Assembly: GCA_977020255.1 (NCBI GenBank)
Contig: CDROCS010000506.1
Span: forward strand, 3,224,001-3,288,000
Direction: 5' to 3'
Origin: Obrimoposthia wandeli
Taxonomy: Eukaryota
Length of the DNA stretch: 64,000 nucleotides
Shown: positions 2,646-53,180 of the stretch, one piece after another
Layout of the letters: each line of letters begins with the position of its first letter
Position numbering within the stretch: the first letter of the stretch is position 1
The notes under the pieces: generated by a model
What the model was told of the DNA's origin: nothing
Seen by the model: only the letters and a program-made list of their open reading frames with translations
Database searches by the model: none
Translations under genes and position numbers: made by a program

Positions 2646-2677
2646 GGTATTCTCTCTCTTGAGGTTTTGAAATGATC

Positions 2678-2704: not shown

Positions 2705-2724
2705 CTTGGTCGATGATCTCGTGA

Positions 2725-3279: not shown

Positions 3280-3542
3280 CTAAAAATTACAATTTAAAAA
3301 TTAATCGATATAGCTTATCAGCACACATAAAATAAGCGCTGGTAACTTAACATTAAACAATACTTCTACCGTCATACTCAAGTGTATACGTTCATCGAGT
3401 GAGGACGGACAAATTTAGCTGGATTATACAGGTTTCAACGCGAGGTGAATGTTTAAATCCGTAAAATTACCGTATTTCCTATTCTCGCCAATCCTTATAA
3501 TTTCTCAACACATAGATTTAATCTAATGAGAGAAACCGTATC

Positions 3543-4373: not shown

Positions 4374-4449
4374 TATTACTGATTTTTCTGCCGTATTTTG
4401 TATCTATCATATCGGTATATTTTTATGACCCATATTGATGGATATTCTG

Positions 4450-5652
4450 ATGAAAAAAACACTATTAGCATTATTGATTTGTTCGACATACGCCAACGCC
4501 AGTGGATTACTGTTACAAGAAGCGGTTGTTGCTAACGCAGGTACAACAGGTGCCGGTGATGGTGTCTATACCGAAACAGCAACTGCAACTTGGACTAACC
4601 CAGCGACGATGACGCACATGGGTGAACAGAAAACCACGGTCAATATGATGGTGCTTGATCTGCAAATGGATTATATCGATACCGATACAGGTCGAAGGAC
4701 TGAAGGTGGTCAATATGAAGGTGATGGTGACGCTGAAACCGTAATGCCTTCGATTGGTATATTTCATGTAATGCAAGTGAGTGAAGATATCCATTTAGGC
4801 ATCAATTTTGGTGCGGTCGGTGGTTCATCTGTTGACTACGGTACTGAATGGGATGGTGGTAATCATTTAGATAAGGCTGTAATGACAGCTGTACAGTTAA
4901 ATCCAATCATGAGTTATAAAATCGATAATAACTGGTCTGTTGGTGTGGGCGCGCAAATTAACTACGGCATTATCGAGGTGAGTACGGCCGGTTTTGATAC
5001 TGAAGCGGGAACAGATTGGGCGTTTGGTTATAATGCCGGTGCCATGTATAAAGCTGAAAAATGGGCTGTAGGTTTAAGTTATCGCTCAAAAGTAGAGTTT
5101 GAGTTCGATGATATAAATGCGGATGTTATCGCTTCAGATCCTGCACCAGTACTCCCATCTTCTTTTACTGTAAGCACTGAGCTACTTGCTCCTGCGATTG
5201 TTGATTTAAGTGGCAGTTATGATGTTAATGGACAACTAACGTTATTGTCTTCAGTGCAGTTCCATCAGTGGAGTGATTTTAGTGGTACCCCTGTTTACAA
5301 CGATACTCTCGCAGCTAATGGTAAAGACCTTGAGATTGATCGTGATTGGGATGATGTGTGGAAATTTGCAGTCGGTGCTGATTACCAGTTAAACGCTGAG
5401 TGGGCATTAAAAGCTGGTTTCTCTTATGAAACTTCTCCGCAAGATGATCCAACGAAACAGTGGGTTGATTTACCTGTTGGTGAACAGTATCGCTACTCTG
5501 TAGGTGCTACGACATACTGGAATGATACCCGTATCGATATGTTCTATGAATATGCTGACTTAGGTTCAGTTGATATTGATAGAAGTAAAGCCAACGTGAG
5601 CGGTACATTTGACGGCAAGATCCACTTTATCGGTGTTAACGTAACGTTCTAA
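4450..5652 (+). CDS. OmpP1/FadL-family outer-membrane transporter
   Basis: Signal peptide ending ANA-SG, NPATM hatch motif (NPA), beta-barrel pattern, terminal Phe (GVNVTF). Start refined to ATG 4450. Confidence 0.88.
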   Translation: MKKTLLALLICSTYANASGLLLQEAVVANAGTTGAGDGVYTETATATWTNPATMTHMGEQKTTVNMMVLDLQMDYIDTDTGRRTEGGQYEGDGDAETVMPSIGIFHVMQVSEDIHLGINFGAVGGSSVDYGTEWDGGNHLDKAVMTAVQLNPIMSYKIDNNWSVGVGAQINYGIIEVSTAGFDTEAGTDWAFGYNAGAMYKAEKWAVGLSYRSKVEFEFDDINADVIASDPAPVLPSSFTVSTELLAPAIVDLSGSYDVNGQLTLLSSVQFHQWSDFSGTPVYNDTLAANGKDLEIDRDWDDVWKFAVGADYQLNAEWALKAGFSYETSPQDDPTKQWVDLPVGEQYRYSVGATTYWNDTRIDMFYEYADLGSVDIDRSKANVSGTFDGKIHFIGVNVTF

Positions 5653-5704
5653 CTGTCGGTAATGTAAGCACTATTATCTAAGCAGTTTCATATAGGAATA
5701 GACT

Positions 5705-6109
5705 ATGTTTTTTACACGTAATTTAAAGCCATTTCTTGTCATCGGCGGTTTAATCACAATGTTCGCGGGTGTCTATGCGATCAACCCTGAATTAGCATTA
5801 CTTGAAATGAATAATCTACCGTATGACGACAACTATGTGTTCCTATTTAGACATTGGGGCATCATGGTAGGTTTGATGGGGTTCTTTATTACGTTATCTG
5901 CGTTTATTGTGCAGTGGCGTGGTTCGATAATGCTTTACTCGTTTATTGAAAAATTATTCATGGTGTATTTATTCATGTCGAATTTTTTCAATCCAGAAAC
6001 TGCGCATTTAAACGTAGACTTCATTGCTTTTGCTATCACAGATGTGACGATTTGTGTTTATACGCTCGGTTATTGGTATGAACAGTACCGTAATAAGCAG
6101 AAACTGTAA
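5705..6109 (+). CDS. Hypothetical membrane protein (about 4 TM segments)
   Basis: 134 aa with several hydrophobic stretches and a polar RHWG motif; RBS aggaa upstream. Confidence 0.7.
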   Translation: MFFTRNLKPFLVIGGLITMFAGVYAINPELALLEMNNLPYDDNYVFLFRHWGIMVGLMGFFITLSAFIVQWRGSIMLYSFIEKLFMVYLFMSNFFNPETAHLNVDFIAFAITDVTICVYTLGYWYEQYRNKQKL

Positions 6110-6148
6110 TTACATAAGAATGCAGCTGTATTAGGTCATAGAATTTGT

Positions 6149-6188
6149 GTGGGTTAGTGTGCCTTTTGTTAGGGGCACGCTGACTCAC
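6149..6188. terminator. Long hairpin between convergent genes
   Basis: gtgggttagtgtgcc pairs with ggcacgctgactcac (15 bp including G-U pairs). Confidence 0.55.
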
Positions 6189-6245
6189 CAATATGTGTTA
6201 TCCGCTTACTCGTTTATTAGCTCAAACCTCCGCGCACGTCCCCCT

Positions 6246-7139
6246 TTATTGATTAAATAGATATTTACCATTTTGATGGAGCTGACAAAACGCAATAAAA
6301 TCCTCGATAAACACTTTGCTTAAGCGAGATAAATGCTTTCTCGATGGATATATTATGTGTAGGTCCACTTCTGGGAATGGGTAATCAATAAGTACTTCCA
6401 CCAGTTCACCCGATTGCAATAATGGATTCGCAAGCATAGGTGGTAATTCACCTAACATGTCACCGCGACGAATAGCTGAAAGTGAATGAGCATAGTCACT
6501 GGATGTGAATTTCGGGTTAATCTCAATGCAATGTTCACCTAATTGCCAAGTGATAGCGCCATGCCCAAACCGCCATGCAGCAATCGGTAATGAGGCGAGG
6601 TCGGCTGGAGTTTTAGGTATACCGTAGTTATTAATAAATTTTTGTGAACAGACCACAACGTGATGGTACTTACCTAGATGCCTTGCGATCGCGGATTGAT
6701 AGTTAACATCACCCACCCGAATCACAATATCAATATCATCATCAATAAAATCTGTTTTTCTCACGGTACTGAAAATATCTAACTGGATTAGTGGGTAAGT
6801 ATTATTAAATTGATGAAACATATCATCAAAGACATAAAGGGCTGGTGGAATAGAGATGCGTAGCTGACCTTTTAGTTCTTCTTGTTCTTCTTGAATAGCC
6901 TGCTCTGCTTCAAAAATAGCATCCAGTCCTGAGCCTGCTCGTTGATACAGTAATTGTCCGACATGAGTGACCGCTAATTTACGTGTGGTACGGATTAATA
7001 ATTTTTGATCTAATTGCGCCTCTAATTCACTCACTCGTCGGCTAACCGTTGCAACCGGGATACTCATTATTTTGGATGCAGCAGAGAAAGAACCGTGCTT
7101 GACGACGTTAACAAAAATATTCAAAGAATTGAGATCCAT
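6246..7139 (-). CDS. LysR-family regulator (CrgA/DmlR-like)
   Basis: MDLNSLNIFVNVVKHGSFSAAS HTH and LLIRTTRKL. Divergent from the oxidoreductase at 7314. Start refined to 7139. Confidence 0.92.
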   Translation of the reverse strand: MDLNSLNIFVNVVKHGSFSAASKIMSIPVATVSRRVSELEAQLDQKLLIRTTRKLAVTHVGQLLYQRAGSGLDAIFEAEQAIQEEQEELKGQLRISIPPALYVFDDMFHQFNNTYPLIQLDIFSTVRKTDFIDDDIDIVIRVGDVNYQSAIARHLGKYHHVVVCSQKFINNYGIPKTPADLASLPIAAWRFGHGAITWQLGEHCIEINPKFTSSDYAHSLSAIRRGDMLGELPPMLANPLLQSGELVEVLIDYPFPEVDLHIIYPSRKHLSRLSKVFIEDFIAFCQLHQNGKYLFNQ

Positions 7140-7313
7140 TGATCTTACCCACTCACTCATGATGATAATGAAACTTAGATTAGCATCAAAAGTGGAATAA
7201 TGATTCTTAAAAGCACCGCTAATTTTATCTATTGAGTTTGGTTATAGTGTTTGCATTGAAACGAGATACACAAACATTCATCAATAATCGAAACAAATTA
7301 ATAGGAATAAAAT

Positions 7314-8297
7314 ATGAAAGCAATTATCGCAACACAAGCTGGTGGCCCTGAAGTATTAGAAATCCATTATGCAGCAGAACCTGTTACTGCGGCGGGTGAA
7401 GTTAAAATTCGCGTGAAAGCATTTGGACTAAACAAAGCTGAAGCATATTACCGTAATGGTGCGTTCGGCGCGTTAAATGTAGAACTTGCTCCGGGCATCG
7501 AAGCGGCTGGTGAAGTCATTGAAGACCCATCAAACACATTCCAACCGGGTGATAAAGTGATCACAGCTATGGGTGGAATGATGTTTGCTCGTCATGGCAG
7601 CTATGCAGAAATCATTGTCGTTAACAAAACCAACGTGCAACGTATTACCAGTGATATTGAATTTACACAGCTCGCATCTTTACCAGAGTTATACCTGACT
7701 GTATGGGGTGCATTAGACAAAACGTTAAACATCGCATCAGGCGAAGTATTGTTAGTGCGAGGTGCAACATCTGGACTTGGCTTAGCCGCATTGGTTTATG
7801 CAAAAGCACGTGGTCTAACAGTTATAGCGACGACGCGAAATGTTGAAAATACCAAGCGCTTACAAACACTCGGTGCAGATCATGTTGTTATCGATAATGG
7901 TGACGTTGCTGAGCAGGTGAGAGCGCTTTACCCACAAGGCGTGGACAAAGCGTTAGATGTTGTTGGTGCTGCAGCGGTGAAAGATACCATGAAAGCATTG
8001 CGACCGTGGGGCGAAGTGACTGTTGTTGGTCTGCTAGGTGGTTCACCTGTGATTGAAAACTTTGGCTTGATGAGTGATTTACCAAGTTCAGTGAAATTAA
8101 GTTTCTTCCAAAGTGGCATGTTAGGAAGTGATGCGCTGCCTTTAGATGAGTCACCATTAAATTGGATTGCAGAACAAGTGCATACAGGTCAAATGCCTGA
8201 TATTACTTCGGCAATCTTTAACGCTGAAGATATTCAAAGTGCGCATGCCTTAATGGATAGTAATAAAGCGATTGGTAAAATTGTCGTTAAACATTAA
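7314..8297 (+). CDS. MDR-superfamily NADPH:quinone oxidoreductase-like protein
   Basis: GGPEVL, PGIEAAG, GSYAE, LVRGATSGLG and C-terminal IGKIVV. Lacks the catalytic Zn cysteines. Confidence 0.88.
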   Translation: MKAIIATQAGGPEVLEIHYAAEPVTAAGEVKIRVKAFGLNKAEAYYRNGAFGALNVELAPGIEAAGEVIEDPSNTFQPGDKVITAMGGMMFARHGSYAEIIVVNKTNVQRITSDIEFTQLASLPELYLTVWGALDKTLNIASGEVLLVRGATSGLGLAALVYAKARGLTVIATTRNVENTKRLQTLGADHVVIDNGDVAEQVRALYPQGVDKALDVVGAAAVKDTMKALRPWGEVTVVGLLGGSPVIENFGLMSDLPSSVKLSFFQSGMLGSDALPLDESPLNWIAEQVHTGQMPDITSAIFNAEDIQSAHALMDSNKAIGKIVVKH

Positions 8298-12596: not shown

Positions 12597-13433
12597 ATGC
12601 CAAAGAATCAAACTGCAACAAATCAATCTACAGTAAAGCAACCACGCGTAACCGTGGAAATCATCGATGAAGTGGCGATAGTCACCCTCAATCGAGGCGC
12701 TAAATATAATGCACTCGACATGGATATGTTCCATGCATTAGATAATACCGCGACAGAACTTGCCGATAACAAAGCCATCCGAGCAGTGATCGTTCGCGGT
12801 GATGGTAAGGTATTCTGCGCTGGCCTTGATGTTAAAAGTATTATCAAAAATCCCCTCAATCCCGGCAAACTATTAAAACGTGAAGAAGGCGAACTCGCTA
12901 ACCTAGCTCAAAAAGTCGGTTATCTGTGGCGTCAAATTCCTGTACCTGTCATTGCGGTGACGCACGGTGTGTGTTTTGGTGGCGGATTACAAATCGCACT
13001 CGGTGCTGATTTTCGTTATAGCACTGCAGATTGCGAATTTTCAGTGATGGAAATTAAATGGGGGTTAATCCCTGATATGAGCGGCATGGTAACGATGCGT
13101 GAACTTACGCGTATCGATATTGCCAAAGAACTCACCATGACAGGGCGTAAATTTAGCGGTACTGAAGCTGAGAAATATGGATTAGTGACACATGTTTGTG
13201 ATGATCCAATGGCGGCCGCTATGACCTTTGTTGATAGTATCAAAACACGTTCTCCAGACGCCATTGTTGCGGCTAAATCATTATTAAATGAGTCATGGGT
13301 TGCATCAGAGCAAGCAGCGCTGGTACTCGAAACCCAAACACAGAAAAAAGTCATGGGAAAGTGGAATCAAATTGCGGCAGTAACTCGTAATTTTATCAAA
13401 AAATCATTACCCTATAGAAAACGTAGTATTTAA
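12597..13433 (+). CDS. Enoyl-CoA hydratase/isomerase (crotonase) family protein
   Basis: FCAGLDV oxyanion motif, CFGGGLQIALGADFR, MEIKWGLIPD. Confidence 0.93.
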   Translation: MPKNQTATNQSTVKQPRVTVEIIDEVAIVTLNRGAKYNALDMDMFHALDNTATELADNKAIRAVIVRGDGKVFCAGLDVKSIIKNPLNPGKLLKREEGELANLAQKVGYLWRQIPVPVIAVTHGVCFGGGLQIALGADFRYSTADCEFSVMEIKWGLIPDMSGMVTMRELTRIDIAKELTMTGRKFSGTEAEKYGLVTHVCDDPMAAAMTFVDSIKTRSPDAIVAAKSLLNESWVASEQAALVLETQTQKKVMGKWNQIAAVTRNFIKKSLPYRKRSI

Positions 13434-23906: not shown

Positions 23907-24995
23907 ATGGCAGGGAATAGTATTGGGCAATTATTTAAGATCTCCACATTCGGAGAAAGCCATGGTCCAGCACTTGGGTGCATCGTTGACGGCTGCCCTC
24001 CAGGACTGGAAATTTCACTAGAAGATCTACAGCTTGATCTAGACCGCCGTAAACCTGGCACATCTCGCTATACGACTCAACGCCGTGAAGCGGATGAAGT
24101 GCAGATCCTTTCTGGTATTTTTGAAGGTAAAACAACTGGTTGTTCAATTGGATTGATGATCAAAAATACTGATCAACGTTCACAAGATTATTCGAACATC
24201 AAAGACACCTTCCGTCCGGGTCATGCTGATTACACATATCATCAAAAATTCGGTCACCGTGATTACCGTGGTGGCGGTCGTTCATCGGCACGTGAAACGG
24301 CTATGCGCGTAGCGGCTGGTGCAATTGCGAAGAAATACCTAGCACAGCAACACGGTATTGTTATTCGTGGTTATTTATCACAACTGGGTCCAATTAAAGC
24401 TGAAGCGCTGCAATGGGATCAAGTTGAACAAAACCCATTTTTCTTCCCTGATCCAAGTAAATTAGAAGCGCTTGATGAATACATGCGTGGTCTGAAAAAA
24501 TCAGGTGACTCAGTGGGCGCTAAAGTAACGGTTGTTGCCCAAGGCGTACCTGTTGGTTTAGGTGAACCGGTATTTGATCGTTTAGATGCTGAAATTGCCC
24601 ATTCACTAATGAGTATTAACGCTGTGAAAGGTGTTGAAATCGGTGATGGTTTTGGCGTTGTAGAACAGCTTGGTAGCGAACACCGTGATGAGATGACACC
24701 AGAAGATGGTTTCCTTTCTAATCATTCAGGTGGCGTGTTAGGTGGCATTTCAAGTGGCCAAGACATTATTGCTCACATTGCGATGAAACCGACTTCAAGT
24801 ATTACTATTCCAGGTAAATCAATTGATAAATTTGGTAACGCCATTGAAGTGGTTACTAAAGGTCGTCACGATCCATGCGTTGGTATCCGCGCAGTGCCAA
24901 TTGCTGAAGCACAACTTGCTATCACGCTAATGGACCACTTGCTAAGACACCGAGCACAGAATCTACATGTGGTAACAGATACACCAAATATGTAG
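23907..24995 (+). CDS. aroC: Chorismate synthase
   Basis: [20 protein letters not shown] and GRHDPCV signatures. Confidence 0.98.
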
Positions 24996-25031
24996 TATGA
25001 GTTACATTAAGTAAAAAAGGCCGCTATATTT

Positions 25032-25493
25032 TTGAAAAATAAAGGTGTACGTGCAATTGCAGTATTGGAAGGGTTCAAAGGGAGCGTTTCTCTTTTGGTT
25101 GGTTTTGGACTTCATGCCTTAGCTGGGCGTGATATTCACCAATTAGCCGAATCGCTTGTTAGGCACTTTCATCTAAATCCGGCGAGCCATTTATCCAGTG
25201 TGTTTTTAAATGCCGCGAGCGACTTAACGGACTCTCGAATGGTATTGCTAGCGCTGGCAGCATTTGGTTATTCGGTTATTCGATTTATTGAAGCTTTTGG
25301 TTTATGGCGTGGATTAGTCTGGACCGAGTGGTTCGCATTGGTTTCTGGGGCAATATACATACCCTTTGAAGTATATGAAATAATTACCCATGCTAGTTTC
25401 TTTAATGTCGGTATATTTTTGATAAATGTGTTGGTTGTTTGGTATATGAGTTATGTACTTTTCAGCAGAAGAAAACAACACGTTAAACATTAA
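25032..25493 (+). CDS. DUF2127-family membrane protein
   Basis: AIAVLEGFKG, EAFGLW, WTEWFAL and YIPFEVYE pattern; TTG start. Confidence 0.82.
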   Translation: MKNKGVRAIAVLEGFKGSVSLLVGFGLHALAGRDIHQLAESLVRHFHLNPASHLSSVFLNAASDLTDSRMVLLALAAFGYSVIRFIEAFGLWRGLVWTEWFALVSGAIYIPFEVYEIITHASFFNVGIFLINVLVVWYMSYVLFSRRKQHVKH

Positions 25494-25508: not shown

Positions 25509-25542
25509 TTATACCCATCAGTTTCGGTTGATGGGTATTTTT
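25509..25542. terminator. Bidirectional terminator at the left edge of the ddd cluster
   Basis: atacccatca-gtttcggt-tgatgggtat perfect stem. Confidence 0.8.
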
Positions 25543-25568: not shown

Positions 25569-26450
25569 TTAACAAATTTCACTTAAAATCCATTGTCTAA
25601 ATGTTTCAATTTTTTTATTATCAATTTGGCTTGTTGGTGTTTTTAAATAGAAACCTTCCGTTGTCGGTATCGTTTGCGAAAAAGGGGCTATTAGCTCACC
25701 TTTGAGTATTGATTTCTTAACTAAAGAACTACGTCCTAGCGCAATACCGTGTCCGTGTTTTGCCATTTCAAATGCAGATACTAACGTGTCAAACGTCATC
25801 CCTTTGTCTGTATTAATATCATGAAACCCTGTCGAATTAAGCCAATGTCCCCAGCCTTCTTCATAACCTATAACGTGTAATAAAGAATGATCATTAAGCT
25901 CACTCGGGCATGTAGGGATTGGCATGCCACTTAATAATTTGGGACTACATACAGGAATTAATTCATCCCAAGTTAATCTATCAGAGCGAAAACCGTCCCA
26001 ATTACCATGGCCGTATCCGACATTAACATCTGAATTCTTATCAAGATCATCAGCCCAAATATTACTTGTAAAACGAATCAGAATGTCAGGGTGCTGTTCG
26101 TAAAATGAGGCCATTTTAGGTGCTAACCATTGGCAAAAAAACACGAGATTAGAGCACACTGTAATTTTAATCTTTTTGCTATCACCAAAAATCTCATTGG
26201 TGGTGGCCGCTAGTTTACTAATAGCTTCGCTAACGGGTGGTAAATATGATTGCCCTGAATCTGTCAATGTTAAGCCACGTGGTAAACGTGTAAATAGAGG
26301 CATACCTAAATTAGCTTCTAAACATTTTATTTGAGTACTAATTGCGGCTTGGGTTAAATTAAGTTCATTTGCAGCTTGGGTAAAGTTCAAATGGCGAGCA
26401 GATGCTTCGAAGGAACGTAACCAGTTTAAAGGGGGAAGATTTTTTTTCAT
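25569..26450 (-). CDS. dddR: GcvA-like LysR regulator of the DMSP cluster
   Basis: LPPLNWLRSFEASARHLNFTQAA HTH; last gene after dddTBC, as in Marinomonas. Start refined to 26450. Confidence 0.82.
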   Translation of the reverse strand: MKKNLPPLNWLRSFEASARHLNFTQAANELNLTQAAISTQIKCLEANLGMPLFTRLPRGLTLTDSGQSYLPPVSEAISKLAATTNEIFGDSKKIKITVCSNLVFFCQWLAPKMASFYEQHPDILIRFTSNIWADDLDKNSDVNVGYGHGNWDGFRSDRLTWDELIPVCSPKLLSGMPIPTCPSELNDHSLLHVIGYEEGWGHWLNSTGFHDINTDKGMTFDTLVSAFEMAKHGHGIALGRSSLVKKSILKGELIAPFSQTIPTTEGFYLKTPTSQIDNKKIETFRQWILSEIC

Positions 26451-26632
26451 TTTAGAACCATAAATGAGACACGTTGTCGCGAATGTTATCATGCTGAAAT
26501 TAACTTTTATTAGACTTAGATCTAAGAAAAAAAACTTATATTAAGAGCATGCTCATACTTAATTTAATTCGGTATAAAAATAAAAAGTTAGATATGTTAA
26601 TGAGTTAAAATATATTTTCATTGTTAAAATAA

Positions 26633-26670
26633 TTTGTCTGTAGCGCTATATTTTTGCGGCTACAGACAAA
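26633..26670 (-). terminator. Terminator between dddC and dddR
   Basis: tttgtctgtagc...gctacagacaaa 12-bp stem. Confidence 0.75.
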
Positions 26671-26700
26671 AGTTAAATAAGCTCTAGCTTGTTCTTGGCC

Positions 26701-28242
26701 TTATTTTAATGTCGGCATTGCAAACTCAACATTTTCACGCAAGCTTGCAGAGGGCCAGCGTTGGGTAATAGTCTTACGTTTTGTATAAAAGCGAACGCCA
26801 TCTGGACCATAGGCATGTAAATCGCCAAACAATGAACGCTTCCAACCACCAAAGCTGTGATATGCAACAGGCACTGGTAACGGTACGTTTATACCGACCA
26901 TACCAACTTGAATATGGTCAGAGAAGTAACGTGCAGCTTCGCCATCACGGGTAAAGATACAAGTACCGTTACCGTACTCATGGGCATCGATTAATGCCAT
27001 TGCTTCTTGCATTGTGTTAACTCGAATTACCTGCAGTACAGGGCCGAATATCTCGTCTTTGTAGCTCAACATCTCGGTTGTTACGTTATCTATTAATGTA
27101 CCTCCGACATAAAATCCGTCTTCATATCCAGGCACTTCAGGATTTCGACCATCAACAACAATCGTAGCGCCATCTTGTTCTGCGCTATCAATATACGCAT
27201 TTACTTTTTCTTGATGCGCTTTTGTAATCACAGGGCCAAAATCATTTTTGGGATTGTTATATGGGCCGACTTTTAAGTCTTGCATCGCCACTGTCATTTT
27301 TTCAATCAACAAATCACCTGCAGTATCGCCCACCGCCACAGCAACGGATAATGCCATACAGCGTTCGCCAGATGAACCAAATGCAGCGCCAACAAGCTGG
27401 TTTACAGCGTTATCCATGTCTGCATCAGGCATAATAATGGCGTGGTTTTTAGCCCCACCAAGTGCTTGGCAACGTTTACCATTAGCAGCCGCTGTAGAGT
27501 AAATATATTCCGCAATCGGTGTTGAGCCTACAAAGCTAACGGCTTGAACACGCTTATCTGTTAAGAGTGTATCAACTGCGGTTTTATCACCATTAATGAC
27601 GTTAAGAACGCCTTTTGGTAAACCCGCTTCTTGTAGTAACTGAGCAATGAATAGTGTTGCGCTTGGATCGCGTTCAGATGGCTTAAGAATAAATGTGTTA
27701 CCACACACGATCGCCATTGGAAACATCCAACAAGGTACCATCACAGGAAAATTAAATGGTGTAATACCAGTTACAACACCAAGTGGTTGAAACTCGCTCC
27801 AGGAATCGATACTTGGTCCTACATTTTTACTAAACTCGCCTTTTAGTAGTTCTGGCGCACCACATGCATATTCCACATTCTCGATACCACGTTGTAATTC
27901 ACCCATCGCATCATGCGAGATTTTACCGTGTTCTTGGCCGATAAGTTCGCAGATTTTTTCTGCATTTTGTTCCAATAACTCTTTAAATTTAAACATAACA
28001 CGAGCACGCTTGATGGGTGCTGTGTTACGCCATTCAGGGAATGCCGCGTGGGCACTTGTAATAGCAGCTTCAACAGTTGTCACACTGGCAAGATCAATAT
28101 TCTTTTCTGATTTACCTGTCGATGGGTTGAAGATAGGTTGACTACGCTCACCATCAATAATCATTTCACCGTCAATCAGCTGACCAATAGTTGTTAATTC
28201 TGTTATTGTCGTTTCAGATTTATCCATTACTACTTCACTCAT
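26701..28242 (-). CDS. dddC: CoA-acylating (methyl)malonate-semialdehyde dehydrogenase
   Basis: ITPFNFP, LKPSERDP, GGAKNH, catalytic GERCMA, EIFGPV and FGGWKRSLFGD (MmsA/IolA type); cluster context. Confidence 0.88.
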   Translation of the reverse strand: MSEVVMDKSETTITELTTIGQLIDGEMIIDGERSQPIFNPSTGKSEKNIDLASVTTVEAAITSAHAAFPEWRNTAPIKRARVMFKFKELLEQNAEKICELIGQEHGKISHDAMGELQRGIENVEYACGAPELLKGEFSKNVGPSIDSWSEFQPLGVVTGITPFNFPVMVPCWMFPMAIVCGNTFILKPSERDPSATLFIAQLLQEAGLPKGVLNVINGDKTAVDTLLTDKRVQAVSFVGSTPIAEYIYSTAAANGKRCQALGGAKNHAIIMPDADMDNAVNQLVGAAFGSSGERCMALSVAVAVGDTAGDLLIEKMTVAMQDLKVGPYNNPKNDFGPVITKAHQEKVNAYIDSAEQDGATIVVDGRNPEVPGYEDGFYVGGTLIDNVTTEMLSYKDEIFGPVLQVIRVNTMQEAMALIDAHEYGNGTCIFTRDGEAARYFSDHIQVGMVGINVPLPVPVAYHSFGGWKRSLFGDLHAYGPDGVRFYTKRKTITQRWPSASLRENVEFAMPTLK

Positions 28243-28319
28243 GAGAGCTCTTCCCTTTTGATAAGCGAATATTCGCTATATTTAAATTAATATAAAATAC
28301 GACCTGTGAAAGTTGGGCG

Positions 28320-29483
28320 TTAATCAACCCAAATCTCTTTATATATCGCAATCATTTCGTCAACGCTTGGAACCCGAGGATTGTTATTTGGTGAACCTGA
28401 CGCTAATGCTTGTTTTGCCATTGTCGGTAGTAAATCAAAGTACTTAGTACTCTCAATACCAAATTCAGCAGGTGTCGGTACGTTAAGTTCAACATTGAGA
28501 GCCTTAAGTTCTACAATCAATTTGCCATTGGCGGCATCTGTTGAATCTGTTTCGCTTGCAATCCCCATGGCTTTAGCGCAATCAGCATAACGTTCAGGTG
28601 CTGCTGGAATAGAAAAGGCCGTCACAGCCGGTAGTAACATCGCGTTGGATAAGCCGTGCGGAACATGAAATGCAGCGCCAATGGGACGGCTCATGCCATG
28701 AACAAGTGCAACTGAAGCGTTTGAAAATGCCATTCCAGCAAGTGTAGAACCTAACATTATGTTTTCACGTGCCGTTTTGTCATTACCGTCATGATATGTT
28801 TTACGTAAATTTGGCGCGATGAGTCTCATCGCTGAGATAGCTTGTGAGTCACTAAACGTATTCGCTTTTTTACTTACATAAGCTTCTATCGCATGAGTTA
28901 ATGCATCAATGCCGGTATCCGCGGTAATTCTGGCTGGTAAGGAGAGGGTTAACTCAAAATCAACCAATGCAGCAACAGGCATGAACCCCACACCTGCGCA
29001 TAACATTTTTTCATCATTTTGTTCATCGGTGATAATCGTAAAACAAGTACATTCAGTACCAGTGCCAGCGGTCGTTGGAATTGCAATTAGGGGCAATCCT
29101 TGCTCGCTAACAACGCGAGGTACTTTATAATCACGCATTTCACCACCAAATTGTGACAACACAGAGATTGCTTTCGCGCTATCAATTGGGCTGCCACCAC
29201 CGAGTGCGATTAAGCAATCAAAATCACCACTTTTAGCTTTGTTGATACCATTTTGAATCGAAGCGACAGTCGGTTCTGGTACCGTGTCATCAAAGATCTC
29301 AGCGGCTAGATCTGATAAGGCTAATGCATTTTGAATTTGAGCTGCATAACCTAATTTAACCATCATTTTATCTGTAATAATTAAGGGTTTTGATACACCT
29401 AAATTATTTAAAACGTTAACGATGTCTTTACTTGCGCCTGCACCAATTTGCATTATGCGTGGTAATATTACTTGTGATGACAT
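28320..29483 (-). CDS. dddB: Iron-containing alcohol dehydrogenase (putative 3-hydroxypropionate dehydrogenase)
   Basis: GGGSPID, PTTAGTG, DALTHAIE, HGMSRP and HGLSNA Fe-binding motifs; cluster context. Confidence 0.87.
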   Translation of the reverse strand: MSSQVILPRIMQIGAGASKDIVNVLNNLGVSKPLIITDKMMVKLGYAAQIQNALALSDLAAEIFDDTVPEPTVASIQNGINKAKSGDFDCLIALGGGSPIDSAKAISVLSQFGGEMRDYKVPRVVSEQGLPLIAIPTTAGTGTECTCFTIITDEQNDEKMLCAGVGFMPVAALVDFELTLSLPARITADTGIDALTHAIEAYVSKKANTFSDSQAISAMRLIAPNLRKTYHDGNDKTARENIMLGSTLAGMAFSNASVALVHGMSRPIGAAFHVPHGLSNAMLLPAVTAFSIPAAPERYADCAKAMGIASETDSTDAANGKLIVELKALNVELNVPTPAEFGIESTKYFDLLPTMAKQALASGSPNNNPRVPSVDEMIAIYKEIWVD

Positions 29484-29543
29484 GACTATTTCCCTATTTG
29501 TTTATAAATAGCAGGGCGTTGACACCCCGCTATTTGGCTGTGA

Positions 29544-31103
29544 CTATTTTAGATCGGCAAGTGTTGCGGACTCAGTCGGATAATCCTCATGTAATGCCCG
29601 GATTAAGCCTATAACTGAAAGTATAATAACGAATGAGAATGGTAGCGCCGCTAATACAGAGGCGGTTTGTAATGTTTTTAAACCGCCTGCAAGTAGCAGC
29701 ACTGCTGCAGATGCGCCTATCGCACAGCCCCAGAAAATACGGTATCTTGGTAGTGGATTTTTTTCACCCATGCAGACAAGTGAACAAATAACTAATGTCG
29801 CGGAGTCTGCTGAAGTGACGAAATAGGTCACAAGCATGACGACACAAATAACAGCCATTAAGAGCGTAATGATTGAGCCTGCATCCATGGCTTCAATTGT
29901 TTTAAATAAAGCCATCGTCATGTCACTGTTTACCGCATCGATAATACCAGCACCTGCTTGTTCTAAATAAAATGCCGTAGAGCCAAATGTAGTGATCCAG
30001 AATGCGCCCATTATTGTTGGTGCAACTAAAACACCCGCGACAAATTCCCTAATCGTACGTCCTTTTGAGATACGAGCGATGAATACACCAACAAATGGTG
30101 CCCACGATAACCACCAACCCCAATAGAAAATTGTCCAATCACCTTGCCAAGAGTCATCTGGATTAGTGTTAACCCAAAAACCAAGCCCGACAACATTTGT
30201 TAAATAATCACCAAAGTTAAGTATGAATTCACTTAAAATATAAACCGTTGGTCCGAGTATTAAAAATAATACTAGGATGACAATCGTCAGCTTCATATTG
30301 ATGGTACTAATGACTTTAATACCTTTATCAACACCGAGTAATACCGAGCCGATAGCGACTACTGACACAATGGCGATAATGATGATTTGATTGACTGTCG
30401 ATACTTCAAATCCAAGTAAGTAGCTCATACCTGCATTTATTTGTTGAGCGCCAAGGCCAAGGGATGTTGCAATACCAAATACAGTACCAAACACGGCTAG
30501 ATAATCTGCTATGTGGCCTATTGGGCCATAAATTTTCTCACCAAATATCGGATATAATGCTGAACGTATCGTCAGTGGTAGTCCTTTATTATACGAAAAA
30601 TAAGATAAAGCTAAGCCAATAAGAGCGAATATAGCCCAGCCATGTAATCCCCAATGGAAAATAGTTACTCGCATCGCAACTTGCTTTGCACCTTCAGGGT
30701 CTGTCACGGCACTGACAAAGGGGTTTGATTGGTAGTGATATATGGGTTCTGCGATACTCCAGAATAGAATACCAATGGCGATACCAGCACTGAACAGCAT
30801 CGAAAACCAAGCGAAATCACTGTATTCAGGTCTGTCCGTTTCTTTGCCTAAGCGTACTTTACCAAAGCGGCTGAAAATCAACCAGATTGAGATAAACAAA
30901 AATATGCTCATTAAGCCAATGTAATACCAGCTTAAATTATCTGTAATAAATTGTTTTGAATCGTTATAAATATCATTGGCAAAATCCCCACCAACAATTG
31001 TAAAAATAATAAAAAATAAAATTAATAGCCCAGACCCAATCATCATGACTGGGTTTGAACCTTTAAAAAATCCTTCCTTCGCGATCATATTTTGATGACT
31101 CAC
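29544..31103 (-). CDS. dddT: BCCT-family (betaine/carnitine/choline) transporter, putative DMSP importer
   Basis: WFSMLFSAG, FHWGLHGW, WTIFYWGWWLSWAPFVG (aromatic box), RISKGRT, TSADS; GTG start with aaggag RBS. Confidence 0.9.
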   Translation of the reverse strand: MSHQNMIAKEGFFKGSNPVMMIGSGLLILFFIIFTIVGGDFANDIYNDSKQFITDNLSWYYIGLMSIFLFISIWLIFSRFGKVRLGKETDRPEYSDFAWFSMLFSAGIAIGILFWSIAEPIYHYQSNPFVSAVTDPEGAKQVAMRVTIFHWGLHGWAIFALIGLALSYFSYNKGLPLTIRSALYPIFGEKIYGPIGHIADYLAVFGTVFGIATSLGLGAQQINAGMSYLLGFEVSTVNQIIIIAIVSVVAIGSVLLGVDKGIKVISTINMKLTIVILVLFLILGPTVYILSEFILNFGDYLTNVVGLGFWVNTNPDDSWQGDWTIFYWGWWLSWAPFVGVFIARISKGRTIREFVAGVLVAPTIMGAFWITTFGSTAFYLEQAGAGIIDAVNSDMTMALFKTIEAMDAGSIITLLMAVICVVMLVTYFVTSADSATLVICSLVCMGEKNPLPRYRIFWGCAIGASAAVLLLAGGLKTLQTASVLAALPFSFVIILSVIGLIRALHEDYPTESATLADLK

Positions 31104-31582
31104 AAATAGCTCCTTAGATTATGTATCAATATTATTACCTACCAACAATGTCATATATCAGCGTATTGAATTTCGGTTTTAATACGTAATTCACAACAAT
31201 GAAAACACTGTTAAAAATGTTAACAAAGTGATGCTTAAAATTAATATCCGGTCATGAATTTAGTGTTTGCATTGTTAAGCAGTTACCTGAGATTGAAAAG
31301 TAATTTAAATCACCTCTATGACCATAGTTTTTTTATAGTTATAAAACAGCATGTTAAAGGTACCCATTAGGAGGTGCTTTGTTGTTTTTAAATAAAAGTC
31401 AAAGATTTTAAAACCAGAATATGAGACTTGTCACTTTATTTTTAGCCATAAAAAAAAACATACCTAAGGTTAAATTTTTGTTGCTGGTCTGTTTTTTATT
31501 TTGCTAATAGTATCCGTTTGAAAGAACACGGTATTAATAATTTACATCATAAAATCGAACTTCATATAATTGGAATCTAATC

Positions 31583-34138
31583 ATGACAACTCAAATTCAG
31601 TTACCACTTAAAGGTATTTCTATTATCGATTTTGGTCAGCAAATTGCTGGCCCGGGTGCAGCAATGATTTTTGCTGACTTAGGCGCAACGGTCATTCATA
31701 TTGATCCACCGACTGGTCCGCTTTGGGATCATCCAGCCAACGCCATATTGAACCGTAATAAGAGCTGTCTTCGTTTAGACTTGAAAGATCCAACTCAGCG
31801 TAAAGAAGCACTGGCTCTAATAGCCAAAGCTGATGTTGTACTCGAGAGTTTTCGTCCTGGTGTCATGAAGAGATTAGGTATTGATTTTGAACTGCTACGT
31901 CAGGAAAATCCGGCGTTGGTTACATTATCAATACCAGGGTTTGCAAGTAATGATGAATTACGTAGTGGTTGGAAAGCAACAGAGGCAGTCGTTTCTGCAG
32001 CATCTGGTGCGTTTAGTGATATGGGCTACAACCGAGTATTAATGGGATTAAATCCTAGCTTTTCGCCATTACCATTAGGTTCTTCATACGCAACCGTACT
32101 TGCCGCAAGCTCTGTTATTTTGGCGCTTTATGCCAGAGAAAAAAGCGGGCGAGGTGATCATATAGAGGTGCCCATTGTTGCAGCGCTAATGGAAGGCTTA
32201 TCATATAATTCTTATGTTGTTGAAAATTTACCAAATCGTTATAAAACAATGCGTGATCATGAAATTGAATATCGTCAAGCAAACAATATAGAAATGGATT
32301 TAAGTTACGAGGATCTTCAAGAGTACTTAGACCCATTTTATCGTACATATTTATGTGCAGATGGGCGCATGTTTTATTGTGTTTGCCCATCACATCGAAA
32401 TCATGCCAAACGAGCATTAAAGGCATTAGGCATCTATGAAGAGCTTATTCGTGATGGTTTACCTGAAGTTGACAACCTACATTTACCAACAAATGAATGG
32501 GATGGAGAAACATCAATAGGTGTTTATCCACTCCCTAAAAAATGGGCTGATATTATATCCACAAAAATGAAAGTCGCATTCCTTACAAAGACATCTGAAG
32601 AGTGGGGGACTATTTTTGGTGAAGGTAAAATTCCTGGTGCACCGCACCGTACTACGCAAGAATGGGTGAACAGCGAGCATTGTGCAAAATCAGGCCTTAT
32701 TGTTACAGTCGAAGATTCACAGTACGGATCAATGAAGCAGCCCGGTCCAATAGCCTGGTTGGAGGAATGTGCTACAGATATGGTCGCACCGGTAGCGCGT
32801 GAGGATGTGAGTGCTGCACGTGCTTTAGATTTATTATCTGTCAACGAAGCTGCTCGTGATTTACCGGAAGTTTCCGCCGTTGTGAGCCAAAAAGGTTGGC
32901 TAGACGGAATTAAAATCCTAGACCTCACTAATGTTATCGCTGGACCACATGCTGCTGCGTTACTTACTCGTTTTGGCGCAGAAGTAACAAAGGTTGATAC
33001 TGTATCTCCTATGTATGATCCATTGATCGGGACGTTTTTTACTTTCCTAACGAATATGGGTAAAAAGAGTGCGTTAATCGATATCATGTCTGGTAAAGGC
33101 CGTGAAGTCTTTAAGCGTTTAGTACAAGAAAGCGATATTGTTCTGATTAATGCACCAAGCAGACAAATGGTACAGTTAGGTCTGGATTCAGAAAGCCTAT
33201 TGGCGGTAAATCCTAAAATATTATTCTGCCGTTTAGATTGTTTAGGTGGTCCATTAGAGGGACCTAAAACAGACTATATTGGTTATGATGATATCATTCA
33301 GGCTAATAGTGGCATCATGAGTCGATTTGGTGGTGTGGCTACGCCAGAAGAGCATGCGCATCTAGGCACTCTAGATGTTAATTGTGGTTTTGCTGGTGGT
33401 TTAGCGATGGCAACATCATTATTTCATCTACAGCGTACTGGAGAAGTAAGTCGTGCGAGGACATCGCTTTCAGCTGTAACAAACTTAGCGCAACTTCCAT
33501 TTGCTTTTGATTATGAAGGTCGGGCACCATTTAATGAACCGTCAGGTCGTGATGCGCTGGGAAATAATGCTTTATCACACTTTTATAAAACCCAAGACGG
33601 TTGGATTTTCATTGACTCTAATACGCAAGAACAAGATAAATTAGCCACTGTTTTAGGTCTTGAAGCATTGATTGATGCGCAAGATAAAAAAGCATTTTTA
33701 ACAATCGCTTTGGCAACAAAAAAATCTCAGGCATGGATTGATGCACTACTTCCACTTGATATTGCAGCCGTCATCCCTCGTAATATTGAAGATTTACGTA
33801 AGCAATATAGTCGTGAAATAAATGGCACTGCAGGTATAGATAGAGGTAGTTATGCTTTTTCTATCTATCCTAATCATCCTAGTGGCCACAAATTAACACA
33901 AGTTGATCATTATGCTATTCGCCCAGTCGAAGCATTTATTAAATCGGTTACGCCGACTGAACGATTTGGTCATTCGACACAAGAGATTTTAGCTGGAGTT
34001 GGTTATGATAAGGCTGAGATTGCAGAGATGATTGAAGAACAAATTGCTGGTTTAGGCTGGGGTAAAGAATTTTTACCAAGTGATGGACTCACTGTTACTG
34101 TAAAAGAAGAAACTAGCGAAACGCTACAACCTGCTTAA
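31583..34138 (+). CDS. dddD: DMSP CoA-transferase/lyase (class III CoA-transferase with two fused CaiB domains)
   Basis: Two CaiB N-motifs (IIDFGQQIAGP and ILDLTNVIAGP), GYDDIIQANSG catalytic-Asp region, and long stretches matching recalled Marinomonas DddD (LDPFYRTY, HPSGH, WG.EFLPS); divergent from BCCT-ADH-MSDH-LysR. Confidence 0.93.
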   Translation: MTTQIQLPLKGISIIDFGQQIAGPGAAMIFADLGATVIHIDPPTGPLWDHPANAILNRNKSCLRLDLKDPTQRKEALALIAKADVVLESFRPGVMKRLGIDFELLRQENPALVTLSIPGFASNDELRSGWKATEAVVSAASGAFSDMGYNRVLMGLNPSFSPLPLGSSYATVLAASSVILALYAREKSGRGDHIEVPIVAALMEGLSYNSYVVENLPNRYKTMRDHEIEYRQANNIEMDLSYEDLQEYLDPFYRTYLCADGRMFYCVCPSHRNHAKRALKALGIYEELIRDGLPEVDNLHLPTNEWDGETSIGVYPLPKKWADIISTKMKVAFLTKTSEEWGTIFGEGKIPGAPHRTTQEWVNSEHCAKSGLIVTVEDSQYGSMKQPGPIAWLEECATDMVAPVAREDVSAARALDLLSVNEAARDLPEVSAVVSQKGWLDGIKILDLTNVIAGPHAAALLTRFGAEVTKVDTVSPMYDPLIGTFFTFLTNMGKKSALIDIMSGKGREVFKRLVQESDIVLINAPSRQMVQLGLDSESLLAVNPKILFCRLDCLGGPLEGPKTDYIGYDDIIQANSGIMSRFGGVATPEEHAHLGTLDVNCGFAGGLAMATSLFHLQRTGEVSRARTSLSAVTNLAQLPFAFDYEGRAPFNEPSGRDALGNNALSHFYKTQDGWIFIDSNTQEQDKLATVLGLEALIDAQDKKAFLTIALATKKSQAWIDALLPLDIAAVIPRNIEDLRKQYSREINGTAGIDRGSYAFSIYPNHPSGHKLTQVDHYAIRPVEAFIKSVTPTERFGHSTQEILAGVGYDKAEIAEMIEEQIAGLGWGKEFLPSDGLTVTVKEETSETLQPA

Positions 34139-34191
34139 TTTAGGGCTGTTATTTTCTTTAGCTAATCGATTATTAAATAAATTTGAGTCAT

Positions 34192-34225
34192 AAAAAAGGC
34201 ACTGATAATAAATATCAGTGCCTTT
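34192..34225. terminator. Bidirectional terminator at the right edge of the ddd cluster
   Basis: aaaaaaggcactgata-ataaa-tatcagtgccttt. Confidence 0.85.
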
Positions 34226-51839: not shown

Positions 51840-53180
51840 TTAGAATGCGCCGTAGATAACTGAAGTGATAGCCATAAGACCACAGATAGTAACGAAGATG
51901 TTAGCTGCTTTAGCGCTAGCATATTTTTGCATTGCAGGTACTTTCTTGATTGCGTACATAGGCATTAGGAACAAGATAGCAGCAATCATTGGTGCGCCAA
52001 TTGTTTCGATAAGACCTAGTACACTTGGGTTGATAATTGCTACAGCCCATGTAGTTAGTACGATGAATGCAATAGAGAATGTGCTGATGTTCTTCTCTGA
52101 TGCTTTTGGCACAACTTGCTTAACTAGACCGTTTAGACCTTCTTGAGCACCTAAGTAGTGACCGAAGTAGCTAGACGTAATCGCTGCGAATGCTACGAAA
52201 GGACCGAAGTATTGAATTAATACTGAGTCATGTACGTTAGCAAGGTAAGACAAGATTGAGATGTTTTGATCTTTAGCTTCTGCTAGTTGCTCTGGTGATA
52301 GTGATAACACACAAGAGAATACGAATAGCATTACGAAACCAAGTAGCATTTGACCAGCACGTTTACAGATAAGGTCAGTTTTTTGTACTGCGTTGTCACC
52401 GTAAGTTTCACGTTGTGCTTTAGCAAACTGGCTGATTACTGGTGAATGGTTGAACGAGAACACAATAAGTGGAATCGATAACCAGATAACAGGTAAGAAC
52501 GAAGATGCTTCAGGAACAACAGTTAACATTGTTGTGTTCCAGCTCGGGATTAAGAATAAAGATAAACCGAACAGGATGAATACTAGTGGGTAAACTAATG
52601 CAGATGTTGCTTTAAGCATTAAGTCTTTACCGAATAGAATCAGTGCAGTCATAACTAAAATTAGACCACCAGATAGTAACCAACGTGGGATACCGCTTAC
52701 TTTATCCATTAACTGAACACCAGCTTCGTTAAGCAAAGGTGCGCCATCAGCCGCTAGGCGTGGGATTTCAGTAAAGATATCAAGTTGGTTAACAATGAAA
52801 CTTTCAAATGTGTTTGTAATACCAACACCGTAGATTAGTACGATAGGGTAAATAGCAAAGAAGTAAGCAAATGTAATTAATTTTGCAGCGCCTTTACCGA
52901 AATGCTCTTCTACAACATCTGTGATGTCTGAATTAGGATTTTTTGATGATAGTACGAAACGAGCAAGTGATCTATGCGCTAACCAAGTCATTGGACCCGC
53001 AAGTAATGCTAGTACTACTAATGGCCAAAAACCACCTAAGCCTGCTTTAATAGGTAGGAATAAAACACCAGCACCTACTGCTGTGCCGAATAAACTTAAT
53101 ACCCATGTTGTGTCTGCTTTGTTCCATTTAGCAGCGTCCATAGTGCTTCCTGCGCCTGTTTTAGTAGCTTGCTCTGACAT
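51840..53180 (-). CDS. HAAAP-family serine/threonine:H+ permease (SdaC-like)
   Basis: [36 protein letters not shown]. Confidence 0.92.

Follow-up and report, generated by a model that had tools for sequence, protein, structure and literature searches.

The five genes at positions 25569-34138 of the window (the whole stretch of 64,000 nucleotides analysed here) very probably constitute a genuine and intact Marinomonas-type dddD / dddTBCR cluster for DMSP cleavage in a psychrophilic Moritella, as judged from gene content, phylogeny and predicted structure. The cluster is presumed to import the algal sulfur compound DMSP and to split it into the gas DMS and carbon that the cell can use. The system is already known, its host has been little studied, and no new mechanism is involved. 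The AroC encoded next to it is 97–99% identical to Moritella proteins, and the flanking DNA shows 86–93% identity to Moritella genomes over more than 20 kb, in agreement with the Moritella-like host that a preliminary description of this DNA had proposed.

Gene content, order and selection

The five ORFs were assigned to domain families by Pfam and NCBIfam profile searches. On the forward strand, dddD (31583-34138) encodes an 851-aa protein composed of two fused class III CoA-transferase (CaiB-like) domains (366 bits against CoA_transf_3 over the two domains). The other four genes lie on the reverse strand. The first, dddT (29544-31103), encodes a 519-aa BCCT-family transporter (609 bits against BCCT) and begins with a GTG start codon that has an AAGGAG Shine-Dalgarno sequence 6 nt before it. 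It is followed by dddB (28320-29483), encoding a 387-aa iron-containing alcohol dehydrogenase (Fe-ADH), and by dddC (26701-28242), whose 513-aa Aldedh product scores 660 bits against TIGR01722, the CoA-acylating methylmalonate-semialdehyde dehydrogenase family of NCBIfam (cut-off 448.5). The last, dddR (25569-26492), encodes a 307-aa LysR-type regulator of the GcvA subfamily with the Pfam domains HTH_1 and LysR_substrate. All five frames are intact in the ORF list of the window and, with their domains, bear out the complete five-gene dddD / dddTBCR cluster of the preliminary description.

The accessory operon follows the Marinomonas-type order of BCCT transporter, Fe-ADH, CoA-acylating semialdehyde dehydrogenase and LysR regulator, divergent from dddD. 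The gap between dddC and dddR measures 208 bp and holds no iclR gene, which is also the Marinomonas-type layout. Of 80 related loci, about half have the same R<C<B<T< >D arrangement, which is the MWYL1 arrangement in the literature (PMC10746254, PMC9327192), so the claimed match to Marinomonas MWYL1 in gene order and orientation stands. Synteny extends to all five genes across genera at 50–82% protein identity, with 57–66% for dddT, 66–76% for dddB, 75–82% for dddC and 50–60% for lysR. When this genome is compared with that of Moritella sp. JT01, the ddd genes have dN/dS values of 0.03–0.06 and a dS similar to that of flanking core genes, and the GC content of the cassette is the same as that of the genome. 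All ddd genes are evidently kept under strong purifying selection.

Identity and active site of DddD

Over residues 1–833, the Moritella protein is 65% identical to the reviewed CoA-transferase/lyase DddD of Marinomonas MWYL1 (Swiss-Prot A6W2K8), whereas identity drops to 20% for the next reviewed protein. Its AF2 model (pLDDT 93.9, pTM 0.94) superimposes on that of MWYL1 DddD with TM scores of 0.97/0.99 and an rmsd of 1.0 Å. Identity to 187 genomic homologues ranges from 65 to 72%, and these include the proteins of SAR92 H921 (67%) and E. acroporae (70%); according to the literature, SAR92 H921 makes DMS and its dddD is induced 15–158-fold. Trees were built with FastTree on 101 sequences and with IQ-TREE on 39. 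The core DddD clade is separated from paralogues with 99% support and the Moritella protein is nested inside it, grouping with the SAR92, Pseudomonas-type and E. acroporae proteins with weak support (94% SH-aLRT) in IQ-TREE. The paralogues at 49% and 37% identity have no ddd neighbours, and a representative at 53% identity adjoins a DddA-like GMC oxidoreductase. DddD is recognised by at least 40–50% identity to functionally ratified DddD proteins and by clustering with them in a tree (PMC9327192), and both are found for the Moritella protein. Its build is likewise the expected one, with two class III CoA-transferase domains in tandem on one chain longer than 800 aa. Thus, the 851-aa double-CaiB protein that had been called DddD-like is supported as such by its identity to A6W2K8 and its position in the core clade, and it does not group with the double-CaiB paralogues.

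The two halves of DddD align to each other and each aligns separately to solved transferases. In the C-domain, D598 (in LGTLDVNCG) aligns with the catalytic Asp of the solved transferases 10uh, 4ed9 and 9br7, and an acidic residue is kept at the position of Frc Glu140. In the N-domain, Ser167 occupies the nucleophile site and aligns to Frc residue 169. D598 and S167 are both invariant in 88 DddD family members. The preliminary description had placed the catalytic Asp in the motif GYDDIIQA; that residue, D569, is ruled out as the nucleophile, since it aligns with the Frc Tyr139-Glu140 position, and the alignments point to D598 instead. In Marinomonas DddD numbering D598 is position 602, and this match in numbering supports its equation with Asp602, the reported catalytic residue of that enzyme. 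D598 and S167 are common to non-DddD double-CaiB paralogues too, and the catalytic residues are therefore no proof of DMSP specificity: the predicted Asp nucleophile of the C-domain is a necessary but non-discriminating feature of DddD.

The Moritella enzyme also has features of its own. Its stem branch in the IQ-TREE phylogeny is 0.46 long, as compared with a median tip of 0.16, and 243 of the 249 invariant columns of the family are kept while six are substituted. It carries a Moritella-specific C-terminal tail of 18 extra residues, with residues 838–851 disordered. Because of the long branch, the six substitutions and the tail, altered kinetics or specificity of the Moritella DddD are conceivable.

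Strain distribution, cassette boundaries and regulation

The ddd genes form an 8.65-kb cassette with a terminator hairpin on each side; it occupies a hypervariable slot downstream of aroC. The left-edge hairpin (25511-25538, forward strand, z = -4.4) stands directly after aroC in the ddd-less Moritella sp. Urea-trap-13. The right-edge hairpin (34195-34225, forward strand, 13-bp stem, z = -6.7) stands between dddD and the APC permease gene, which converge, and homology to Urea-trap-13 resumes at 34190. The cassette is carried by this genome, Moritella sp. JT01 and sp. 5, and it is absent from Urea-trap-13, M. dasanensis and a third Moritella-like genome. A survey of the genus had been proposed in the preliminary description; the cluster was recovered in JT01 and sp. 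5 but not in Urea-trap-13 or M. dasanensis, and the ddd cassette is accordingly an accessory, strain-variable element in Moritella, not a trait of the genus. A DUF2127 membrane-protein gene (25032-25493, forward strand) forms a separate 0.5-kb indel; among the Moritella examined it occurs only in ddd-positive ones, and in other genera it is unlinked to ddd. No part in the DMSP pathway is assigned to it.

No mobility genes (integrase or transposase) were found between aroC and Aa_trans, a tRNA scan found no tRNA near the slot and an Rfam scan of the aroC-proximal slot returned nothing relevant. The search for flanking att-like repeats yielded only a 10-bp direct repeat, which is at chance level. 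The cassette thus lacks the integrase, transposase, tRNA target and att-like repeats of a mobile island, yet it shows a clear presence/absence polymorphism.

The divergent dddT-dddD intergenic region (31104-31582; 479 bp, 28% GC) should be the site of both promoters, that of dddT and that of dddD, and of a DddR operator if there is one. A sigma-70 scan of the region gave 22 sites against 28.5 expected, promoter-like sites being no commoner than in shuffled sequence. An 11/12 sigma-70 match at 31541-31570 falls within a stretch covered by a contig from an RNA library. Phylogenetic footprinting of 46 dddT-dddD intergenic regions detected no shared dyad operator, only A/T-rich noise, and the only palindromes left are ones conserved within Moritella. 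Two candidate dyads are kept in JT01, CTATG-N2-CATAG (31316-31327) and TTTTATAGTTATAAAA (31331-31346), and these are putative operators only; the top-ranking 6+6 dyad (31209) has no conserved counterpart in JT01 and was rejected as a candidate.

Metagenomes from ice, surface-marine and seafood samples contain sequence nearly identical to the cluster. Two marine metatranscriptomes hold contigs that match it at 99% identity or more, with coverage that is thin and patchy and lacks a silent-region control. JT01 is a psychro-piezophile isolated from 6957 m. The occurrence of dddD in deep water has already been documented for other taxa, with relative enrichment in water of 2000–8000 m (PMC7494906), and a broad literature search on hadal dddD gave nothing specific. 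The preliminary description knew of no report of the cluster in this lineage. Among the papers searched, none discusses DMSP catabolism or dddD in Moritella, but GenBank already lists the JT01 orthologue under the name DddD; dddD in Moritella is therefore only partly new, and its novelty is modest.

Proposed function and relation to known ddd systems

By homology, DddT would import DMSP as a BCCT transporter, and DddD would then move CoA from acetyl-CoA onto DMSP through the nucleophile Asp598 of its C-domain, acting as a pseudo-dimer in which one chain holds both class III CoA-transferase domains. Elimination of DMS by the same enzyme would leave 3-hydroxypropionyl-CoA / 3-hydroxypropionate (3-HP), as in the acetyl-CoA-dependent mechanism described for DddD (PMC8163506). 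DddB would oxidise 3-HP to malonate semialdehyde and DddC would convert the latter to acetyl-CoA, regenerating the CoA donor and feeding central metabolism; in the literature, too, these two reactions are only inferred. DddR, a LysR-type protein, may respond to DMSP, or to a catabolite of it such as 3-HP, by activating the divergent promoters, a mode of regulation drawn from PMC13104084.

In coastal water, most use of DMSP carbon is attributed to bacteria with DddD (PMC9327192). Bacteria also gain protection from hydrostatic pressure through DMSP (PMC7494906). We tentatively suggest, as a possibility short of an even chance, that some psychro-piezophilic Moritella, including the hadal JT01, consume DMSP in cold, dark or high-pressure habitats in which it acts as a piezolyte, through an independently acquired, fast-evolving DddD cassette whose enzyme, with its long branch and extra tail, would be a cold- or pressure-adapted variant. 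If this is true, ddd-positive and ddd-negative sister strains would offer a ready test of what DMSP catabolism adds in deep water, sea ice and chilled seafood. Culturable psychrophilic and piezophilic Moritella with an intact, selected cluster are tractable organisms in which to study DMSP cleavage in cold and deep habitats, with a built-in control in the polymorphism between this genome, JT01 and sp. 5 on one side and Urea-trap-13 and M. dasanensis on the other. The metagenome matches suggest ice, surface-marine and seafood settings as further places where the cluster could matter, and a DMS off-odour in chilled seafood is conceivable. DMS that forms in deep water probably does not escape to the atmosphere, which limits the bearing of the cluster on climate, and the understanding of the DMSP pathway itself is unchanged by the Moritella cluster.

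Three other readings deserve consideration. It is possible, if rather unlikely, that the main role of the cluster in Moritella is to control an intracellular pool of DMSP as osmolyte, cryoprotectant or piezolyte, with growth secondary and DMS a by-product. The pressure protection afforded by DMSP, the deep origin of the carrier JT01 and the use of BCCT-type transporters for compatible-solute uptake as well would fit such a role, although the lyase is coupled here to a full route to acetyl-CoA, a linkage that goes with growth on DMSP elsewhere (PMC9327192). The sequence does not separate pool control from growth on DMSP, and the two roles are not mutually exclusive.

That the enzyme is a diverged double-CaiB paralogue for another zwitterion (for instance a carnitine-like compound, or a different propionate of the sulfonium or betaine kind, DMSOP among them), making little or no DMS, is improbable. 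The protein is nested in the core clade between lineages with DMS-making strains, retains 65% identity to the type enzyme, with an rmsd of 1.0 Å between the two, and has the full dddTBCR synteny that is missing in paralogues at or below 49% identity; these points outweigh the long stem branch with its six changes at otherwise invariant positions, even though the catalytic residues do not discriminate between substrates and BCCT specificity cannot be read from sequence. Least credible, and hardly to be expected, is that the cassette arrived recently and rides along, unexpressed or decaying, in a variable slot of the genome. Its location in a hypervariable interval and its absence from Urea-trap-13, M. 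dasanensis and the third Moritella-like genome would suit a passenger, but the ORFs are all intact, dN/dS is 0.03–0.06 with a dS equal to that of flanking core genes between the two strains, GC content is the same as that of the genome and near-identical sequence appears in RNA libraries. A functional DMSP-cleavage cluster therefore remains our preferred reading, and it is best viewed beside the ddd systems already described.

The locus of Marinomonas sp. MWYL1 (Todd et al. 2007; A6W2K8) matches the Moritella cluster in its five genes, their order and their orientation, and neither locus has an iclR gene between dddC and dddR. Its DddD shares 65% identity, a superimposable predicted fold and a nucleophile Asp at the equivalent position 602. 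The hosts differ, Moritella being a psychrophile of the Alteromonadales and Marinomonas MWYL1 a member of the Oceanospirillales, and the predicted Moritella DddD differs in its 18-residue disordered C-terminal tail and long stem branch. In the SAR92 (H921/H231) and Pseudomonas-type clusters, dddD is divergent from dddT-B-C-...-lysR as in Moritella and the proteins are 57–82% identical, but an extra IclR regulator, absent from Moritella, stands between dddC and lysR. The same cassette type is found on a conjugative Antarctic Pseudomonas plasmid (pMPC6-328K); this MPC6 copy lies beside IS30 and IS630, whereas the Moritella copy is chromosomal and without mobility genes.

The dddD-dddT-dddA-dddC-acuNK clusters of Halomonas HTNK1 / D47 resemble that of Moritella in leading through DddD to 3-HP and acetyl-CoA and in being controlled by a LysR-type regulator, which in Halomonas (DddZ/AcuZ) senses 3-HP or acrylate. 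They differ in gene order, in using the GMC flavoprotein DddA where Moritella has the Fe-ADH DddB, and in adding the acrylate genes acuN and acuK; dddA, acuN and acuK are all absent from the Moritella cluster. The single-domain class III CoA-transferases Frc, CaiB, SUGCT and YfdW have the fold of each DddD half (TM by target 0.7–0.8), and the Asp169 nucleophile of Frc and the acidic residue at its Glu140 position have equivalents in the C-domain of Moritella DddD. The single-domain enzymes form homodimers from chains of ~400 aa and have two active sites, whereas DddD is one 850-aa chain with a Ser at the nucleophile site of its N-half and an extra lyase step that releases DMS. Finally, the dddD genes of Colwellia, Glaciecola punicea and Psychrosphaera belong to the same family and come from the same order (Alteromonadales) and similar cold habitats. 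Their proteins nevertheless fall in a different clade, a joint clade with Moritella being rejected (p-AU 8e-64), and in their layout, unlike that of Moritella, lysR separates dddT from dddD and is read from the same strand as dddD. The phylogenies presented here show that the Moritella cassette was gained independently of the copies in other Alteromonadales such as Colwellia and Glaciecola.

The ddd genes and the family position of DddD

An ORF listing recovered all five genes claimed in the preliminary description. On the reverse strand these are a LysR regulator of the GcvA subfamily (dddR, 25569-26492; Pfam, NCBIfam), a CoA-acylating methylmalonate-semialdehyde dehydrogenase (dddC, 26701-28242; TIGR01722, 660 bits vs a cut-off of 448.5), an iron-containing alcohol dehydrogenase (dddB, 28320-29483; Pfam, NCBIfam), and a BCCT transporter (dddT, 29544-31103; 609 bits, Pfam/NCBIfam), which starts at GTG with an AAGGAG Shine-Dalgarno 6 nt ahead. 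Divergent from these on the forward strand is dddD (31583-34138), encoding an 851-aa protein with two CoA_transf_3 domains (Pfam/NCBIfam). The GC content of the cluster (about 0.40) is the same as that of the remainder of the window. The proposed Moritella-like host was borne out, as the adjacent AroC is 99% identical to that of Moritella sp. Urea-trap-13 and 97% to that of M. dasanensis, and more than 20 kb of flanking DNA is 86-93% identical to Moritella genomes at the DNA level.

The 851-aa protein shares 94% identity with proteins from Moritella sp. 5 and Moritella sp. JT01. Over its whole length it is also 65-72% identical to members of a large family, about 837 aa long, that occurs in Oceanospirillales, Pseudomonas, SAR92, Endozoicomonas, Pseudovibrio, and others. 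With a 62-sequence alignment as input, AlphaFold2 gave a very confident model (pLDDT 93.9, pTM 0.94). Compared with reviewed UniProt entries, the model matches A6W2K8, the CoA-transferase/lyase DddD of Marinomonas sp. MWYL1, with 65% identity over residues 1-833 (TM 0.97/0.99, rmsd 1.0 Å), while the next reviewed match, Rv1866, is 20% identical. Working criteria for DddD ask that a protein match ratified ones at 40-50% identity or more, exceed 800 aa, and group with ratified sequences (PMC9327192); the protein falls within all of these, in line with its earlier description as DddD-like.

For the DddD tree, double-CaiB representatives of 50%-identity clusters from an exhaustive search served as outgroups, and these proteins grade continuously down to about 27% identity. 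The core DddD family was split from the outgroups with 99% SH-aLRT and the three Moritella proteins form their own clade within it (100% support). Together with Endozoicomonas acroporae, Pseudomonas/Rhizobium, and the SAR92/Porticoccaceae clade, they make up a group of weak support (94%). DMS release has been shown for SAR92 H921, in which dddD is up 15-158-fold on DMSP (PMC10746254), and E. acroporae likewise releases DMS and induces dddD (PMC7174347). The border of the core family drawn from the tree is the same as that drawn from genomic context: a 53%-identity representative adjoins a DddA-like GMC oxidoreductase gene, and ddd partner genes are absent from the genomic context of the 49% and 37% representatives. 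The second-highest score (1529 bits) belongs to a 996-aa ENA metagenome protein (P0002) with 63% identity over just 76% of the query, possibly a Moritella-like dddD that is fused or mis-called.

Active site, integrity, and selection

Each half of DddD was aligned separately with solved class III CoA-transferases. Asp598 of the C-domain (LGTLD598VNCG) coincides with the catalytic Asp in 10uh, 4ed9, and SUGCT. The preliminary description had placed this residue in GYDDIIQA; D569 of that motif instead occupies the Tyr139-Glu140 position of formyl-CoA transferase (Frc; VYENVAQ), as confirmed by counting along chain 1t3z and by internal N/C alignment, and is thereby ruled out as the nucleophile. 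D598 corresponds to residue 602 in Marinomonas numbering, in agreement with the catalytic Asp602 reported for Marinomonas DddD. In the N-domain, Glu134 lies at the second position of the Frc Tyr139-Glu140 pair, and Ser167 takes the place of Frc Asp169, in alignment with both 'LGDSN' of 3ubm and the D169S mutant 1t3z.

Asp598, D569, Glu134, and Ser167 are invariant in 88 family members and in 13 outgroups. Such conservation points to a competent enzyme of double-CaiB architecture and does not set DddD apart from its paralogues. The picture that emerges is of a putative single-chain pseudo-dimer with one functional nucleophile. Each half aligns to monomeric transferases with a TM by target of 0.7-0.8, and the high pTM of the model speaks for the two halves being packed against each other in a fixed way.

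Of the 249 columns that do not vary among the other 85 family members, Moritella DddD keeps 243; the six changes are A25G, F149Y, E225D, F460L, Q489L, and D747N. Its stem branch is long (0.46 vs a median tip of 0.16), and an 18-residue Moritella-specific C-terminal extension (residues 834-851, window 34085-34138) runs past the family's ...GWGKEFLPS end. This extension differs among Moritella strains, and its residues 838-851 have pLDDT below 50 and are predicted to be disordered. When this genome is compared with JT01, the five ddd genes have dN/dS of 0.027-0.061; judged by these ratios, the cluster is under purifying selection. Their dS is 0.24-0.68, against about 0.50 in prmB and aroC on the flank, and the cluster was probably already present in the common ancestor of the two genomes.

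A variable slot beside aroC and its occurrence

What follows aroC varies with the strain. In a Moritella-like genome (AroC 89%) it is directly the Aa_trans gene (window counterpart 51840-53180), and in M. dasanensis a sensor kinase and a LacI remnant. Urea-trap-13 carries a 125-aa nucleoside deoxyribosyltransferase-like gene and then an APC/beta-galactosidase/gal block, without ddd or DUF2127. DUF2127 and ddd are followed by an MFS gene in JT01 and by a 17.6-kb block in this window (two APC permeases, DUF386, GH2 beta-galactosidase, LacI, galE-T-K-M, hybrid sensor kinase, second LacI). In Moritella, the interval from aroC to the Aa_trans gene (24996-51840) is a hypervariable catabolic slot that, by strain, holds nothing, a sensor kinase, the small deoxyribosyltransferase-like gene, the ddd cassette, and/or the 17.6-kb block.

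Homology with Urea-trap-13 ends at 24996 and restarts at 34190, and the hairpin at 25511-25538 is the one that follows aroC in that strain. By these breakpoints and the shared hairpin, the 8.65-kb cassette is flanked precisely by two strong terminator hairpins (z = -4.4 and -6.7). Homology with JT01 stops 4 nt past the dddD stop codon. The cassette edges carry no integrase, transposase, or tRNA gene and no meaningful repeat, and the aroC-Aa_trans interval holds no mobility gene. Within the genus, the cassette would most likely have moved by exchange through flanking homology.

A 10-bp direct repeat, TAAAAAAGGC, occurs at 25012-25021 and 34191-34200. Relative to the ddd-less strain, the first copy lies 15 bp within the left breakpoint and the second coincides exactly with the right one; alone, the repeat is not significant (chance expectation about 0.2-0.5). 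Just downstream of dddD in JT01 (12772-12949 of the fetched locus) lies a 60-bp remnant of the APC permease 3' end, and after it a 125-bp fragment that resembles an aroC-internal stretch (window 24653-24777). Both have the look of scars left by a former deletion or rearrangement at this junction.

Near-identical ddd sequence turned up in sequencing runs of isolates, in metagenomes from seafood ('food'), marine, and ice sources, and in two metatranscriptomes of marine origin. Contigs from these two RNA libraries match dddB, dddT, and parts of dddD with at least 99% identity; at a depth of 3-5, with patchy coverage and without a silent-region control, they are consistent with expression but do not prove it. 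Several 'food metagenome' runs (X2, X3, X5, X11, X14, and X15) contain 47-77% of the sampled words of the dddD locus; ddd-positive Moritella are thus present in food, presumably in chilled seafood.

The cluster had been thought undescribed in this lineage. A literature search found no paper joining Moritella to dddD or DMSP catabolism, and a Moritella comparative-genomics paper does not mention DMSP, but the JT01 protein is already named 'DMSP acyl CoA transferase DddD' in GenBank. At depths of 2000-8000 m, dddD is documented for Halomonas-like sequences (PMC7494906). We regard the finding as a sound annotation that places a known system in an under-reported host and adds some population-genomic detail; the mechanism is not new, and what is new is the setting in Moritella (aroC slot, breakpoints, and strain variation).

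Pathway, origin, and comparison with known ddd loci

By homology, the whole pathway and its regulation may be carried over to Moritella: DddT would be the presumed importer, and DddB and DddC would presumably convert 3-hydroxypropionate (3-HP) via malonate semialdehyde to acetyl-CoA, although the biochemistry of these two enzymes is not firmly established (PMC7174347). Marinomonas DddR is a LysR activator that responds to DMSP, whereas its Halomonas counterpart AcuZ binds 3-HP and acrylate, not DMSP (PMC13104084). No operator or promoter could be defined in the dddT-dddD intergenic region. At 31316-31346 it holds a palindrome, CTATG-AC-CATAG, followed by TTTTATAGTTATAAAA; both are retained in JT01, the sole change being the 2-nt center of the first (AC to GT), and they are candidate regulator sites.

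A joint DddD clade of Moritella with Colwellia, Glaciecola, and Psychrosphaera, a group named after the first tree had been seen, was rejected (p-AU 8e-64). Phylogenetically, the original source of the cassette is placed outside the sampled Alteromonadales lineages. The entire cassette also lies on pMPC6-328K (NZ_CP034782.1, 158362-178857), a conjugative 328-kb plasmid of an Antarctic Pseudomonas, beside IS30 and IS630, and such a plasmid is a plausible type of vehicle. Core-type dddD genes 68-70% identical occur on pMPC6-328K, on plasmid NZ_CP115240.1 of a human-derived P. aeruginosa isolate, and in the enterobacterium Leclercia tamurae, all unexpected non-marine carriers.

When the window proteins were mapped onto 80 fetched loci, the order dddR<dddC<dddB<dddT< >dddD was found in roughly half, including Marinomonas MED121, M. 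rhizomae, Amphritea atlantica, Marinobacter, Pseudomonas, and SAR92 H921, with protein identities to the syntenic partners of 50-60% (R), 75-82% (C), 66-76% (B), and 57-66% (T). JGI metagenome contigs share the arrangement, which is that of MWYL1 in the literature (PMC9327192, PMC10746254), as the preliminary description had recognized. Like Moritella, Marinomonas has no IclR gene between dddC and lysR, judged by spacing, whereas Pseudomonas and SAR92 carry one there, and the ddd layout of Colwellia, Glaciecola, and Psychrosphaera is unlike that of Moritella.
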